Positions 360-57,765 of a stretch of 64,000 nucleotides of DNA are shown in pieces. The stretch is from Takakia lepidozioides. Its lineage: Eukaryota; Plantae; Bryophyta. Position 1 is the stretch's first letter. Every line of letters starts with the position of its first letter. The translations under genes were made by a program, and so were the position numbers. The stretch spans positions 72,416,001-72,480,000 of the forward strand of contig CM060732.1 in the NCBI GenBank assembly GCA_030704615.1, read 5' to 3'. Under the pieces are notes generated by a model. It was given only the letters and a program-made list of their open reading frames with translations, was not told the DNA's origin and searched no databases.

Positions 360-3103
360 CTATCTCACAAGTGAGTTGGTGTTTCCATCGTCAACCTCAA
401 TGAGAGTGGGGTCGTCTTGGGGATGATGAATACCCTCCTCCATTGTGGACGTCAAATCGCAAATTTTCCCTTTGGCTGCTCGAACCCTAACAAGAAGGTG
501 TTGCTGTAAAACCGTGCTCTGTCTGGTCATGTCGAGAATCCGCTCGAACTCAGTTGATATCATTCCCAACAATGGCAGTCCTGGACTTTTCTGAGACGAA
601 TATGGTGATGAGTTGTGTGTGGAAGGAAGGGGAGGCGCTTTGGAGCGCATTGATGTGGGTGATTGCGGTGGTGCAAACAGGCTATGAAGGCCTCCTCTGC
701 TGCTGCCAATAAGGCTTCCACAATATTTTGCTATGGTGCCATCTTCCAAGTTGGGGTGCATCATTTGCAAAACCTTCACCTGATGTGCACACATATTCCC
801 TTTGCGGGCATGACGACAATCGCAACACCCCCAGTTGGACTGTGGATTGTGAACCGTATAAGTAGTCCCGTCATCCCAAATACATTTGACAGTTGCGATG
901 CCCCTTCTGTCTGCGGAAGGTTGACGGAATCTGTTTGGCAAGCAAAATAGAGCTATAGACGAAGCCTTCGAGTCGCTTATTACGGATGAAGCCATATGTT
1001 TTGGCATAGGACATATACCAGTAATGAGTGAGCAAATCACCTGTGAGTTCATGAATGAGCCAATCGACTCGTCTACTGACCAGTTTAGTCTTTGTGCATT
1101 TCAGCTGTGCCTTCAGATTTCCATGATAAGCTTCAATGGCGGCATTTGTGTCTTGTCTTGCGTGTGGAATGTTGCGAGAACCCAATGTCCACATCTTAGC
1201 TTCAGGAACCCACTCCTGCTCCAAGTTGTCACAAAATCCACTTAGAGTGGGGTACTTGAAATGCAAATTCACAAGTTCGCACACCGCCCATGCTTCACCT
1301 ACGTCGCCCTCGTTTTTTGACGCACTATACATGATTTTAGACATGTCTTGCATGACACATGCACGCAAATCTGCATCTTTGATCTTAGACACAACATTCT
1401 TTTGCCATGCTCTCCTCACATGCCAAAGGTATAGAAATACTGCAGGCTGCCCCCACATGGCCCTGACATAGAAAGACATGTGAGAACATTATAATGTGGA
1501 GAAGTGCAGAAAACCTCGGAGTTTCAAAGAGGTGTGAATTGACAATCACCTGATTGCTTTTATTTCAGCATCTGCGTCATCAACAATGAAAGCATGTGGG
1601 CACCATCCTGCCTAGTCACCCTGAAGCTTCCCGTTCAGTGCAGACATCCATGGCTCCAAATCGATTGCCTTTGATCTCGCTGTGATGATGAATGCAACTG
1701 GGATTCCATTCAACCACTGGTCGAATACCATCATGGTGTATAGCGGGTACTACATAAACAACAGTCAATGTACAACAATTCAGGCAAGTTTGAATGGAGA
1801 AAGATCTGAGGAGGACCTTTGTACAATGTGGGGATGCAATATGGCAAGTACACCCTAAACTTGACTTCAACGATTGTAATGAAGAAAAAACAGAGATCAC
1901 ACCTTCTTCCCATTGGTTCCGAAGGTGGCGTCGCAAGCGACAATTCTATGATGGCCAAATTTCAACATTTGATCTCGCTTCCACACTGTTTGTATGCCAA
2001 GAACGAATGGAAGATCAAGCTTGATGTCACTGGATGTCCAAGCCTTGTGGTTCTTTTCTTCTTGGTAGTAGAAAACATTGGCCATATTTTCATGCACCCA
2101 CATGCGGACACTCTGGGCATCATTTGGGTGTTTTCTGAATGTCTCTTCATCGCATAGCGTCGCAAAATTGCGTATGTCTTGGGAGAGGAGAAAAGTGTCA
2201 CGGTTGACGTCCAACCCTTGCTCCATCAACTCCTTCACTCGCATGGTGTGCTTGGCCATTATCTTGTTCATGCTTAGCCCAAGACGCAAATTGTGCAAAA
2301 TCCATGACTTCATGTCATCACTAAGATGGGGAGCCATTGCACTTCGGTTCAACTAACATGAAGGTCCGTGGCATATCTCACCTCTTCCATTTATATGTTG
2401 TTTCTCATGATAAACTATCTCCGCCATAGCAGGGTCCAGGTAGCATTGTTTGACAACAAATCGGCACATGCAACCCTTCTCCTGTTTTGTTGTTTGTAGT
2501 CCTTACTTGTTTTGGTTTTTGTCCTTTGGATTGCGGCCCTACTCTAGGCTTCCTCCCCCTTTTCTTGGCTGGACCTGCACGCCATTTTTTGGCACGCATA
2601 ACATCTGTTATCTCCACAGTGTTTTGGGTATTGTCTTGTGGGCCATAGGCGCAGTGATACATAGGAGCGGTTCTAAAAGGCCACTCATGTTTTTGGCATA
2701 GGTAAAGCAGAAGTGCATGGCTAGTGGGATTGGACACAACCTATATAGTGGGCAGCATTCATTTCATTTTTCATGAATCATGAATTCATACCTTGTAATG
2801 TTCATGGCACTATTGATGCGTGGTGCCTGAAGACTCCCAGCAGGGGTGCCCTTTTGTCGATGACTTCGGAAGGTGCATGGGGCCTCTTTCAGGGAGGACT
2901 CACCAGCAATGAAGTCGACCACCCGATTCCAAGGGATATATGCAATTTCAGCTGTGTTCTGATCATGTGTCTGTCCATGCCATTGGGACCTCCATTGCAC
3001 GTCATGGTGTGTGAAAGTACCTGTCTTTTGGTGTTTGTAGCAGACCTTGCAGTTTACAAAGAAGGTGGGGCAAAATTTTGCCATCTTCAACCACTTCAGC
3101 CAT
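360..3103 (-). pseudogene. Decayed intron-containing Mutator-like (MULE) DDE transposase gene with N-terminal zinc finger and C-terminal SWIM finger
   Basis: Spliced by eye: KGCMCRFVVK...H...CHG zinc finger; first D in VACDATFGTN, then an intron, then YPLYTMMVFD; second D in FIVDDADAEI; YLWHVRRAW (CxxH position); E in TNAAIEAYHGNLK; SWIM CCDC-x7-CAH. In-frame TAG stops near 2353 and 1612 and frameshifts near 930 and 3025. The other end of the element lies outside the window. Confidence 0.85.
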
Positions 3104-19739: not shown

Positions 19740-20348
19740 CGCCTCCTCCAATTACGAAAATTCAGCAGAAGAGGAGACAAACCAGAGCCTTGTCCGTAGT
19801 GCTTTGCTTTGTTTGGAGCAAAGAGCAGAGTTGTGGAGAATTTGGCTGTGGAGCAAGGGTAAGGTCGATTTGCTTCGAGCCTTCCGCCTTCCGTGCCTCC
19901 TCCAACAAGAGTTTCATCCCCAGTTTGAGTGCAAACGTAAAGTCAGCAAAATTGGGCACAAGTTTCCGTGCAGACGTCTCGCAGGTCGCTCGGCAAAACC
20001 CAAACTGGGTATGATACCTAATTTCATCCCGTGTTTCTTTCCTTTGTATCGGTTTGGTCCCCAGTTTCTTAACTCGTCCCCAGTTTTTGGCACTTTACGG
20101 AACACTTTAATGTCATCGCGATATTCCAGAACAAGTCTGCACTCGCGCTCCTCTCTCCAAGAGAGACAGAGAGAGACAACGGGTCGGATCGGGTCGACCC
20201 GTGTCGGGTGACTCAACCCGTTGGATCGTCGCCCGCGCAGAGGTTCGGCCGTTGTTTCGTGGGGTCAGCCCCTGGTAGCGAACAAACACCGTGCGATCAT
20301 TTGATATCGAACGATCTAAAAACACGAAAGGATTCGGGTGTATATCAG

Positions 20349-20943
<595 letters not shown>

Positions 20944-20974
20944 TTTGTGCTGGAGGCTTTGTTTCTGTTCTAAT

Positions 20975-20990
20975 GGTGTTTTTTAACACC
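20975..20990 (+). terminator. Histone 3'-UTR stem-loop-like element
   Basis: GGTGTT-TTTT-AACACC (6-bp stem, 4-nt U loop) followed by ACC, 31 nt after the H4 stop codon. Confidence 0.7.
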
Positions 20991-22315
20991 ACCTTTCGAA
21001 GTAATTCTCACTCCGGTGCTAGTAGGTTCTGTTTCTGGTCGTAGAGTTTGCATGTTTTTGGTGGTATAGCTTGTCGCTAGTTGCACTCTCGCAAGTTCTT
21101 CCAGAGTGCTTTCGCTTGGGGCACAATTGCTTTTCAGGGCTGCACGCTTCTGATCTGTTGCCGTTCTGGTTCAAATCTTTGTTTATGCTACTGGTTGGCA
21201 TGAGAATGTGAGTGGTTTTCCTTTGTAGAGAAGCATGGAGGGTTACAGGGATCTGCAGAGAAGGTTGGAGGTCTTGTAGAGGTTTGAGATGGACCCTTCC
21301 CGTCTGGTAGGGATGCGGAAAGACGTCGACGAGTTTGAGTCTCTTCGACTATTATGTAGTTCTAACATGTCAGCGGATAGTATGCTATGATAATGTGGAT
21401 CAATTCACTGATAATCTGGTAGTTCATGTTCGTACCAATTGTCTTGGATAGTTGCAGGCAAGATAATGGTTTAACTGCCGCCTTGGCGCTTGGTGCTTAT
21501 TAGAGTAGATCTACGATGTCATGTAAACGATAGGGTTGCATGTTAGTGCTTGTTGTTACACAACATGTGAAGATTCGACCATGTAGGGCTAAGAAGATCA
21601 CACCTTCTTTACATGTAGTGTCCCAGACAGTGAAATTTTCACTATAAGGTATCTAAATCTATGTAATGGATGCAATCTCAAAAGTTGCGATTGGTTTTAG
21701 GGCAGCCTTCGGAGCAGCGAGCACAGACTCTCAATGAATTGGTGAGACCCCCGAGCACATCGTTGTTATCCATTCTGCTATCAAAGTGTTGCAATGTTAT
21801 TGCATATAGGTAACAGTCACTTCCATGGCATTCAAATCTGCACTTAGCATTCGACAGTTGGAATGCGAACAGTTAGCAGTGAACTACCACTCCATCTCTG
21901 CTTCAATTTCGGAAATTAGCTTGAATTTTCACCTGGAAGCGTGCGAAATCTCGGAACATGTTTGTTGCTATGCTCGGATATTTGAGTAGGTGACAACTAA
22001 CAAGTATAATGGTGGACAAGATAAAGATTTGACACCTACCTTGACGCGCATGCTTGGTTTGCTCACATCCTGTAACATGACTCCTGCCTCTAGTAGCGTG
22101 AGATGACTGGCCGTCCCACTCTCAATGTCGATTCCACAATAACGAATTGGACTGCACATTTTTTTTGCATTTTAGATTGAATGTGTTTACTGAATGAATA
22201 TGTCTCCCTATCCCACCCTTAGAGGACAGTCCCTGTAAGCCCCCGAGTTTGTTAAATACTCAAGACAGATGATACAAACTACAAACAAGAGTAACAAGAA
22301 CTCAACAAGCTCCAC

Positions 22316-24313: not shown

Positions 24314-25570
24314 ATGAAGGTGACGGTGTTGACAGCCGATGAGCGGATAGTTTCCCTGGATGTGGAGCCTGACGAGCTGGTTGAGAATTTGAAGGCCATA
24401 TTGGAAGTGGAGACACAAGTACCGCTTAGTCAGCAACAAATATTGTTCAATGGCCAAGAGGTTCCAAACACTGCCCGCCTGAATGCAGCTGGTGTAGTTG
24501 ACAATGACTTGTTAATGCTTGTTTCGGCCCCCACGTCCTTCAGTGCAGGAGGGCTGGCACCAAGCGATTTGGCCCTCAATCCAGATGGGTCTGCTGTCAA
24601 TCCGATTGCCCTTCAGAGACACCTTCGTGGTGATCCGAATGCCATGAATCAGCTACAGCTAAGGAACCCTGAAATAGCACAAGCGGTGCTGGGCAATAAT
24701 GTTGAGGTCTTCCAGAGGCTTTTACGACAGCAACATCAACACGCAAAAGAGCTTGAACAGCGGCATCAACAAGAAATTGATTTGATGAATGCTGATCCTT
24801 TTGATGTGGAGGCACAAAAGAGAATCGAGGAAGCGATTCGTCAGAAAAACGTGAATGAGAACTGGGAGGCTGCAGTTGAGTACAATCCAGAGGGTTTTGC
24901 GCGCGTGATAATGCTCTATGTGGATATGGAGGTCAATGGTGTTCCTTTGAAGGCGTTTGTGGACAGTGGAGCTCAAAGCACTATCATTTCAAAGCAATGC
25001 GCAGAACGGTGTGGGCTTTTCAGGCTGTTGGATCGACGTTATGTTGGCATTGCCAAAGGAGTTGGTCAGACTGAGATTGTTGGGCGGATCCATGTTGCAC
25101 CGCTCAAGATAGGGGGCAACTTCTACCCCTGTTCCTTTACCGTGCTGGACCAGCCTGATTTGGAATTTATTTTTGGCCTAGATATGCTTCGAAAACATCA
25201 GTGTTCCATTGATTTGCAAAACAACGTTCTTCACGTTGGTGGAGGGGATATTTCTGTCCCTTTCTTGCAAGAGAAAGATCTGCCACTGCATTTGCATGAC
25301 GATAAACAAGTTGAAGATGCTCCATCGGCCTCTGGCACCAGCAGTGCTTTAGTAGACGTGCATCCCCCAGAAACCATTCATGCACCTGCTGGTCGAGTAT
25401 CTGCCCAGGATGCAAAGAAGAGAGCTAGAAGCCCACAGGACATGTCTGCAGCAGAGTTGAAGGTGCAAAGATTGGTGGATCTTGGGTTTGATCGTGCAGC
25501 AGTTCTCCATGCCCTCGTTCTCTTCAAGGGAAATGAAGAGCAAGCTGCTAGCTATCTATTTGGAGGCTAA
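24314..25570 (+). CDS. DDI1: DNA damage-inducible protein 1 (UBL - retroviral-type aspartyl protease - UBA), intronless 418-aa CDS
   Basis: UBL MKVTVLTADE..VENLKAILEVE; DPFDVEAQKRIEEAIRQ; MLYVDMEVNG..AFVDSGAQSTIIS; FIFGLDMLRKHQC; UBA LVDLGFDRAAV..GNEEQAASYLF. Confidence 0.96.
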   Translation: MKVTVLTADERIVSLDVEPDELVENLKAILEVETQVPLSQQQILFNGQEVPNTARLNAAGVVDNDLLMLVSAPTSFSAGGLAPSDLALNPDGSAVNPIALQRHLRGDPNAMNQLQLRNPEIAQAVLGNNVEVFQRLLRQQHQHAKELEQRHQQEIDLMNADPFDVEAQKRIEEAIRQKNVNENWEAAVEYNPEGFARVIMLYVDMEVNGVPLKAFVDSGAQSTIISKQCAERCGLFRLLDRRYVGIAKGVGQTEIVGRIHVAPLKIGGNFYPCSFTVLDQPDLEFIFGLDMLRKHQCSIDLQNNVLHVGGGDISVPFLQEKDLPLHLHDDKQVEDAPSASGTSSALVDVHPPETIHAPAGRVSAQDAKKRARSPQDMSAAELKVQRLVDLGFDRAAVLHALVLFKGNEEQAASYLFGG

Positions 25571-27316: not shown

Positions 27317-29500
27317 TTACCAATAATCCCCACAAGAACACAACCCATCCTCAAAGTGATGGAAGCGGATGGCATCCCTTGCAACAATGACTCGCCCAAC
27401 AATCTGTGAAATGAACTTGGTGGCAGTGTGGCAATCACCACATATCCGAAAGTATTTGATTATGCGTAGGGGGGTGCCAGGAGGTGTGTTGATGAGCCCG
27501 AAAGCAATGGCCAGCCTTTCACTGTGGTGCAGGAGGGCCTGTTCCTTTTGCATCCGGTCTACATCATGCAAGACAAAGCAAGTGTCTGGCACATATCCTG
27601 CTTCCTTCATCTTCCTATTCAAGCTATTTAACTCTGCATAGATCTCCTCTGTTTGGAGGTGTGATCTATCTTCTACAATGAATCTATGTACAGTGTTCTT
27701 CACCTCAATCCAGCTGCAACCTGGCTCCTTTTTCACACTTCTGTCCTCCATTACTTTCCTCACTTTTGCTACATCATCCCACCTGCCAGCTACAGAATAG
27801 ATGTTTGAAAGAAGCACATATACTCCAGCATTGTGTTGTTCAAACTTCAGAACAGATTCTGCGGCACACTCTGCGAGTTCCACATTGCCATGGATTCTGC
27901 AGGCACCAAGCAAGGCCTCCCACACTGAAGCAACTGGTTCACATGGCATTTTGTTGATGAAGTCTTCTGCTTCAGCCAGGCCCTGCATGGCCAAGAAGAT
28001 CAACCATGCAGCCATAGTGACTTCCTGTTGGTGTGATGCCATAATCCTGACCCATAGAAAGGAAATGCTGATGACCTTCATCCACTAAACCCATATAGCT
28101 GCATGCAGACAGAACCCCAATAAATGTGACATTGTCTGGCTTCACCCCCTCCCATTGCATCTGTTTAAAGAGTTGGAGAGCCTCGTTACCGTGCCCATGG
28201 TGGGCATACCCTATTATCATTGCATTCCATGAGACCACATCTCGTTCAAGAATTGTGTCAAACACCTTCCGTGCATCCCACACGCTCCCGCACTTGGCAT
28301 ACATGTCGACAAGGGCATTCCCAACACTGATGACCGACTCACATTCAGAAGTGATGAAATGGGCAGGGACACACTTGCCCTCTTCCAGGGCTGCTGCGCT
28401 GGCACATGCATTGAGGATGCTAATAAAGGTAACCTCATTGGGCTTCACCCCTTCTCCTTGCATTTGCTCAAAGAGTTCAAAAGCTTCCTGAAAATAACCA
28501 TATTGAGCAGATCCTGCAATCATCGCAGTCCATGTGACCACATCCCGCTTGTGCATTTTGTCGAACACTCGGCGTGCATCCACCACACTCCCACATTTGT
28601 AGTACATGGTGATAAGGGCAGTGCCCACTCGGACATCTGACTCAAATCCGGCTTTCATGATGCCCACATGGAGCCGCTTACCTTCTTCCAGAGCTGCTGG
28701 AATGGCACATGCATTAAGGATGCTAATGAAAGTGACCACATTTCTGTTTTTCATGTTGTCATATACTCGGAGGGCATCTACCACACTCCCGCACTTGGAA
28801 TACATACTGATCAGGGCAGTCCCAACTCGAACATCCGACTCAAATCCAGCTTTGGTGATGCCCGCATGGAGTCGCTTGCCTTCTTCCAGAGCTTCTGGGA
28901 TAACACAAGCGTTGAGGATGCTAACAAAAGTGACCATGTTGGGCTTGGTCCCTACTCTCTGCATTGTCCGGAAGAGTTCAAATGCTTCCTCCCTATGACC
29001 ATGCTGAGCGGATCCTGCAATCATGGCAGTCCATGATACCACATCTCGCTTAGGCATTTTGTCAAAAACATGGCGCGCATCCACCACACTCCCGCACTTG
29101 CAATACATGTTGACAAGAGCGTTTCCCACTCGGACATCTGACTCGAGTCCGGCTTTGATGATGCACCCATGGAGCCATTTGCCCTGCTCCAGAGCAGCTG
29201 GGATGGCACTCGTGGGCTAATGAAAGTAACCCTGTCTTCCTTTGTGCCCTCCAATTGCATTTGCTGGAACAGTTCAAAAGCCTCCTCAGCATCACCTTGC
29301 TGGGCACATCCTGCAATCATCGAAGTCCACAACAACACATCTCGCTTAGGAATTTTATCAAATAAGCGTCGTGCAACCCTCAAATTCCCACATCTGCAAT
29401 ACATGCTCACAAGGGCGGTGGCCACTCGCATGTCTGCATCGTATCCAGCTTCGCAGATGCCCACATGGGAGCACCACTGTTTGCCCATGAAGCCATGCAA
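27317..29500 (-). pseudogene. PLS-class PPR-E-DYW (C-to-U RNA-editing factor) pseudogene
   Basis: Regular P-L-S triplets (DVVSWTAMIAG / VTFISILNAC / VRVGTALISMY), PG-box KKEPGCSWIEV, HSERLA, CGDCH and terminal CSCGDYW; frameshifts near 29215 and 27980; degenerate N-terminus. Confidence 0.92.
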
Positions 29501-56411: not shown

Positions 56412-57765
56412 TCATGTGTTGATGACGTGGTTGCACAATATCGCCCTCAAATCAGCACCAACTGTATGGCCCCTATTGACAACTGGTTCTTGACTGTGGG
56501 CAACTCGATCACGCTCCATGATGGCTGCCATGGCATCCATCTCATTGTAGATGCCCTCGAAGTCAAATTCCTTGAAATCAACCAAAAGATTATATAGGAT
56601 GCAGCAGGCATGAATAACCTGGGGCAAGAAATCAATGTCGAGTTTGCTCCTCCAACCCACCTCTTTGAAGGTACCTTTCATTTGACCAAAGGCAATCTCC
56701 GAGAAAATTCTTGCCTTTGACAATTGGTGATTGAAGATGGTTTTGGCTCTAGAGAGGACTGGAGCGTTGGGAGCTCTTTTGTAACTAGGGATGAGCCAGG
56801 GGAGGGCAGGGTAGACTGCATCACCAATAAGGAGTGGTGGGATCTCGTGTCCATTGTCAAGAATGACATTCTCACCACGCAAAAGAGTGCCCTGTGACGC
56901 AGGATAGAAAAGGGGGGAGTTCCGTAACACCCTAGAGTCGTTCATACTGCCGGGCTCTCCAACATAGATATCTACAAACTTTGCATCTGGATCCACGACC
57001 CCTTGTAGAACCATTGAATAGTAACCATTTCTGTTCCTGTAATCAAATTTGATGTCATTGTTAGGGGCCTTGATTCTGATCTGTGTACAATCAATTGCAC
57101 CAACAACATTCGGAATCCCTGATCTCTTCTCATTTTCAAGCATCGATTTCTTGAGAGTCTCACCTCCTTGCCACTGCAGGTGGTGACCCAGGACAGAGAT
57201 AATGGCAGGGACCACTTGTCGCAAAAGCTCATACAGAGTTGAACGACCAATTCCAAAAGCCTCGGTAATTTCTATTGTTGTGGCTGCCCACAGTAGTTTA
57301 TAAAGCACTGCCCCTACTCTCATCGGTACAGGTAAGCTCCTCCGATACCTAGTATCCTGCATTTGTATAACCGGTGCAAGGGCATTGCACAACCAATCGA
57401 ATGTGCCTGCACTCATCTTCATAATCTGCAGCCATCTCTCGTCATCATATTGCAAAAGAAAGTCCTCAAACCAAGCTCTCGATCTGTGCTTGACCCACAT
57501 CCCTGAAGACACACCACCTCTCGGCTTGTAGTTCATAATGGTCCAGAACTGGCGCTGCAAAAAAACTCCTACATGCAAGGAGTAACATATCTGGATCGTC
57601 CTCCTTGGCTAGGTCAATATCATGACGAAGCAGAGTCGGTCGTGCCTCTTGTGGGCGTCTCATCCCAAACAACTCTGGAGCCTGATCGAGCATGAACTGT
57701 ATAAAGACAAGAATCTCTCCCATGGCAATAGCCAATTCGTTTGTCATATTGAAGTCTGAACTCAA
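56412..57765 (-). CDS. Harbinger/PIF DDE transposase (HARBI1-like); probable frameshift near 57570
   Basis: HTH region (VGAVLYKL..FGIGRST), GAIDCTQI, YRNRNGYYS..LQGVVD, PGSMNDSRV, LIGDAVYP, FNHQLSKARIFSEIAFGQMK, ACCILYN. Confidence 0.92.

Follow-up and report, generated by a model that had tools for sequence, protein, structure and literature searches.

A GGUGUU-type stem-loop behind a histone H4 gene of a provisionally placed moss: a probable histone 3' processing signal

In animals, the histone stem-loop is bound by SLBP, and cleavage of the pre-mRNA is directed by the U7 snRNP and the histone downstream element (HDE). The original prediction for the locus described here started from the premise that land plants are regarded as lacking this stem-loop, a view that held in 2021 (PMC8600027) but was overturned in 2026 for moss, fern and cycad (PMC13130582). 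In the latter study, nanopore full-length RNA data revealed poly(A)-less histone mRNAs together with RF00032-type stem-loops and SLBP in P. patens, Adiantum and Cycas debaoensis (PMC13130582, Genome Biol 2026 27:146). Stem-loop motifs were found in 33 of the 51 poly(A)-less genes when the RF00032 cut-off was applied, loss was reported in Selaginella and in angiosperms, and Cycas panzhihuaensis has kept SLBP with all of its histone mRNAs being polyadenylated (PMC13130582). Furthermore, tail-less stem-loop histone mRNAs together with SLBP have been reported across bryophytes, along with LSM10/11 in land plants and a widespread occurrence of FLASH outside animals (bioRxiv 10.64898/2026.10.14.759114). 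The same preprint credits the presence of SLBP in mosses partly to Lopez and Samuelsson (2008) (bioRxiv 10.64898/2026.10.14.759114). Non-polyadenylated histone mRNAs with 3' palindromes and SLBP are also described for the green algae Chlamydomonas and Volvox, which like the land plants belong to the Viridiplantae.

The window analysed in the present study, i.e. the whole stretch of 64,000 nucleotides, contains a histone H4 gene whose features are collected in Table 1. Scanning the window for histone genes gave none besides this H4 at 20632-20943. The gene ends with the stop codon TGA (20941-20943), and plant H4 of identical protein sequence is present in 10348 blocks of public assemblies. The hairpin announced for its 3' side, GGTGTT-TTTT-AACACC-ACC at 20975-20993 and 31 nt past the stop, could be confirmed by direct reading. 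We consider it probable that this hairpin serves as the stem-loop for 3' processing and regulation of a replication-type H4 gene belonging to a moss. The feature is real and conserved, and it is almost certainly functional. The locus resembles the P. patens system in that both combine a moss, a core histone gene, a stem-loop of 6 bp and 4 nt shortly after the stop codon and SLBP in the lineage. It differs in being from a different moss and in having a hairpin under the RF00032 cut-off. The window hairpin is one more example of a phenomenon that was already published for mosses in 2026. It opens no new question, the concept being out since that year and moss SLBP being attributed to the study of 2008.

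Table 1. Coordinates of the H4 gene and of the elements around it in the window.
Feature	Position	Strand	Basis or remark
Plant histone promoter-like element: TGATGTCA followed by CGGATCG, hexamer/octamer-like pair	20393..20409	+	pattern scan
TATAAA box	20509..20514	+	pattern scan; 118 nt 5' of ATG
Intronless, intact histone H4 gene, 103 aa plus stop	20632..20943	+	ORF and translation
Conserved 27-nt island: 5' flank TTCTAAT, stem-loop, 3' flank ACCT	20968..20994	+	25/27 identity to L025, L044 and L048
5' arm GGTGTT	20975..20980	+	fully paired with 20985-20990 in MFE and consensus folds
Loop TTTT	20981..20984	+	first and third positions U, like stem-loops bound by SLBP
3' arm AACACC	20985..20990	+	read directly; MFE and consensus folds
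ACC tail (20991-20993) and putative cleavage zone, 4-5 nt after stem	20991..20995	+	zone by analogy with animal histone pre-mRNAs
GAAGTAA, weak purine element	20998..21004	+	read directly
Pyrimidine-rich block TTCTCACTCC, weak candidate downstream element	21005..21014	+	aligned in A2

The stem is built of six Watson-Crick pairs, beginning with GG and ending with CC, and the 4-nt loop is closed by the U-A pair T20980-A20985. The second G of the stem base is a key contact of SLBP. In the 5' flank CTAAT, positions -3 and -2 are A, and position -1 is occupied by T rather than by C or A; on the 3' side the flank reads ACCTT, and the two flanks correspond to the ACC(C)A 3' flank and the A-rich 5' flank of the histone element. 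The hairpin is like the animal RF00032 stem-loop in its 6-bp stem, its 4-nt loop, the two basal G-C pairs, the U-A pair at the top and the loop uridines 1 and 3, and also in the A's of the 5' flank, the ACC of the 3' flank and the location approximately 30 nt past the stop. In contrast to the animal element, the middle of the stem reads UGU/ACA instead of CYC/GRG, the base before the stem is U instead of C or A, a conserved purine-rich HDE was not found, and the hairpin obtains 20.9 bits compared to a threshold of 34.

The stem-loop had initially been called canonical. The gathering cut-off of the Rfam family RF00032 (Histone3) is 34 bits, the H4 hairpin stays below it, and scanning the window with RF00032 at the gathering threshold returned no match. 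The term canonical was thus overstated; the element is a GGUGUU/AACACC variant. When RF00032 was applied to comparison H4 loci, hairpins of the GGCYCT class passed with 34.8-38.9 bits, whereas those of the GGTGTT class failed with 19.6-29.3 bits; in that scan the loci L025 and L044, discussed below, did not reach an E value of 1. On tests other than RF00032, the window hairpin is assigned to the biological class of SLBP-type histone 3' stem-loops.

As regards the chance occurrence of such structures, perfect hairpins with a 6-bp stem and a 4-nt loop amount to 46 per strand in the window, three of them beginning with GG. The H4 hairpin is the only one among these three GG-starting hairpins (both strands, 128 kb) that has a U-A top pair and an AC tail in addition to the loop uridines 1 and 3. 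For comparison, we used 80 H4 loci on metagenome contigs, which provided 42 distinct GG-initiated 6-bp hairpins at most 150 nt past the stop. In the ungapped alignment of these 42 hairpins (A1) the GG start was part of the selection rule, so that the invariance of the GG...CC base pairs has to be read with this criterion in mind. Outside the selection rule, the alignment shows that the stem is closed by T and the 3' arm opened by A, that T occupies the first and the third loop position, that the tail is AC and that the 5' flank is rich in A. The columns of the stem-closing U-A pair and of the loop uridines 1 and 3 are at least 90% conserved (n=42), and the same is true for the AC directly after the stem. 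The window hairpin matches the features of A1 with the exception of the 5' flank, where A's occur only at -3 and -2. It is situated on the sense strand of H4, and its distance of 31 nt from the stop compares to 22-90 nt in the 42 comparison loci.

A covariance model (R1) was then built from the 42 H4 stem-loops, leaving the window out, and was run with filters off over the whole window (both strands, 128 kb). Its sole significant match was 20967-21002, with 21.6 bits and an E value of 4.4e-5, while the runner-up had 12.4 bits and an E value of 0.12. As controls, we included 22 H4 loci, namely nine chromosome-scale loci encoding the identical protein (L001-L009, taken among the longest contigs listed from exact H4 protein matches, and seed-plant-like by their UTRs) and 13 plant-type H4 loci from metagenomes. 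The hairpin was absent after the stop codon in all 22 control loci, and R1 found no match 3' of H4 on the gene strand. Weak R1 matches (E 0.005-0.08) appeared 100-200 nt upstream of the H4 start codons in L001 (1308-1342), L050 (1006-1040) and L008 (1367-1399). They were rejected as hairpins because they actually consist of the nonamer CCAACGG followed by CCACC, a combination that resembles the stem-loop's flanks but does not fold into a hairpin.

Conservation was evaluated with three metagenome contigs carrying plant-type H4 (L025, L044 and L048), which encode a protein 100% identical to the window H4 and whose coding sequences are closest to it in DNA (82-85%). All three show the GGTGTT/AACACC stem with the TTCTAAT flank 32-34 nt past the stop. 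The metagenome contigs Ga0116226_10106330, Ga0116231_10001981 and Ga0116227_10005157 probably derive from peat-moss-associated samples. In the MAFFT alignment of the H4 3' UTRs of the window and these contigs (A2), the island 20968-20994 is identical at 25 of 27 positions to each of them. Outside the island, the identity of the UTR amounts to 19-31% upstream and 27-38% downstream. Such an island within an otherwise unalignable 3' UTR points to purifying selection on the hairpin. The second and third loop positions do not vary among these moss-like relatives; the first and fourth do, as does the first base of the tail. RNAalifold applied to A2 gave the H4 hairpin as the only shared structure. 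The single-sequence fold of the window (MFE -23 kcal/mol, z -2.67) had additionally proposed a long-range helix of 9 bp, in which 20947-20955 pairs with 21011-21019 and brackets the stem-loop. This helix was rejected, as it is absent from the alignment fold and is not kept in L025 or L044.

The same stem occurs on other contigs as well. L016 and L043, both of high GC3, carry the 16-mer of the window (GGTGTTTTTTAACACC) in identical form, together with ACC, behind their H4 genes, and on L080, which also has a high GC3, a GGTGTT/AACACC stem stands behind both H3 and H4. These three contigs look algal. The finding of one stem behind H4 (L016, L043) and behind H3 plus H4 (L080) identifies GGUGUU as a genuine class of histone stem-loop in the green lineage; a text search of the literature for the GGUGUU stem variant gave nothing relevant. 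The H3 and H4 genes of L080 form a divergent pair, with stem-loops at 468-483 (-) and 1567-1582 (+), the loops of which read AATT and ATTT, i.e. the uridine at loop position 1 is not kept.

With regard to the organism, the window contains an intronless DDI1 ORF at 24314-25570 (+). The identity of its product falls from 79% with Sphagnum magellanicum and 78% with Ceratodon to 74% with Calypogeia and 67% with Marchantia, and the identity to any moss in the database is at most 79-83%. A maximum likelihood tree places the window DDI1 inside the moss clade with 95/95 support and the liverworts outside, and it separates the window sequence from the Sphagnum and Ceratodon groups alike. Hence, the organism is likely to be a moss, a placement that is provisional since it relies on the single gene DDI1. 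At the corresponding locus of Sphagnum magellanicum (L010), no H4 was called within 10 kb of DDI1.

Some further observations were made on the neighbours. The window DDI1 is an uninterrupted ORF of 418 codons, and the 79% identical gene of Sphagnum magellanicum (L010 10001-15594) spans 5.6 kb and presumably contains introns; the window gene may be a retrocopy or may have undergone wholesale intron loss. At 27317-29129 (-), a PPR gene that encodes E, E+ and DYW deaminase domains is divided between two overlapping ORFs in different frames (27972-29129 and 27317-28081). A short intron or a frameshift could account for this, or the gene could be a pseudogene. A PPR-DYW gene fits a plant with organellar RNA editing. 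Moreover, the ORF 56412-57578 (-) has DDE_Tnp_4 and Plant_tran domains and corresponds to a PIF/Harbinger-type transposase.

Promoter elements of plant type precede the window H4. A pattern scan gave the hexamer/octamer-like pair and the TATA box (Table 1) as well as a nonamer-like motif upstream of H4 at 20219. The string TCACAYGGATCGA, which resembles the plant histone hexamer/octamer, occurs 5' of H4 in the window (20393-20409) and on the moss-like contig L025 (about 940-960). The gene is like angiosperm histone genes in its identical H4 protein and its plant-type promoter elements. However, histone mRNAs of angiosperms are polyadenylated and SLBP is absent there, whereas the window H4 carries a stem-loop.

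The weak purine element GAAGTAA noticed at the beginning is indeed present downstream of the hairpin, but it is not conserved: L025 and L044 show no purine-rich sequence where they align with it. It was rejected as an HDE. More generally, A2 (window against L025, L044 and L048) did not reveal any conserved purine-rich histone downstream element, and the purine-rich HDEs reported for chlorophytes (bioRxiv 10.64898/2026.10.14.759114) have no evident counterpart in the window. The pyrimidine-rich block TTCTCACTCC aligns to TTGTCGCTCT of L025, L044 and L048 at a similar spacing from the stem. With a rough estimate of 0.1-0.2 for such a match of TTCTCACTCC and TTGTCGCTCT arising by chance, the block may serve as a lead only.

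Taking the animal biochemistry and the 2026 data for P. patens as a guide, a plant SLBP would bind the RNA hairpin of H4, recognizing the uridines of the loop, the A's of the flanks and the second G-C pair of the stem. The CPSF73-containing histone cleavage machinery, probably joined by a U7-type particle with LSm10, LSm11 and FLASH, would cut the pre-mRNA 4-5 nt past the stem, at about 20994-20995. The mature H4 mRNA would then end in the stem-loop and lack a poly(A) tail, and the complex of SLBP and stem-loop would support the translation and the S-phase-linked turnover of the H4 mRNA. By this analogy, we infer SLBP-dependent and poly(A)-independent 3' end formation of the H4 mRNA. The suggestion made at the outset that the lineage may retain an SLBP pathway fits the published moss data (PMC13130582; bioRxiv 10.64898/2026.10.14.759114).

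Other explanations have to be considered. The conserved stem-loop could be bound by SLBP and yet most transcripts could be polyadenylated further downstream, or both mRNA forms could be comparable in amount. We regard such a mixed or transitional use as possible, albeit on the unlikely side. It has precedents, because histone genes of P. patens, of the fern and of Cycas debaoensis yield both forms (PMC13130582), and the lack of a conserved HDE at the window H4 would be compatible with it. Conversely, the ACC flank, which is needed to position the cleavage site, is conserved, and a near-upstream-element hexamer is absent for about 790 nt: the first AAUAAA-type hexamer that the pattern scan detected 3' of H4 is at 21733. 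This gap fits a tail-less mRNA only weakly, since plant poly(A) signals are loose and a missing AAUAAA-type hexamer before 21733 represents weak evidence. The stem-loop could also be a relic, inherited intact in a species that no longer uses the pathway. Cycas panzhihuaensis shows that parts of the pathway can outlive the process, but the nearly invariant island in a diverged UTR indicates ongoing selection, and we give this explanation very little credence.

It is likewise very improbable that the hairpin is a chance palindrome or an element acting at the DNA level, for instance a terminator-like structure or an inverted repeat bound by protein, that has nothing to do with SLBP. The RF00032 score below the cut-off and a stem that departs from the animal consensus at four of six positions could be quoted in its favour. 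However, it was already disfavoured by the uniqueness of the strict pattern in the window and by the E value of the R1 match, and the position, strand, loop uridines and flanks agree with the 42 other H4 stem-loops. Moreover, the island is kept in the relatives and the stem recurs behind both genes of L080. Hence, a 3' processing and regulatory stem-loop is the reading that we prefer for the window hairpin.

Beyond this single gene, the results concern the way in which such elements are searched for. Surveys that rely on the RF00032 threshold miss genes with the GGUGUU stem (20-29 bits), and a stem-loop model trained on the green lineage detects this variant cleanly. One could go further and propose for mosses a histone 3' signal that is longer and of its own kind, in which the fixed 27-nt unit (UUCUAAU, GGUGUU stem, ACCU) is combined with a pyrimidine-rich block that replaces the purine-rich HDE. 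At present, we consider this extension rather doubtful. If it were true, it would imply that either the pairing end of the U7 snRNA is different in mosses or cleavage there is independent of U7, and published counts of plant histone genes with stem-loops would be underestimates, because the GGUGUU class falls below the Rfam cut-off.
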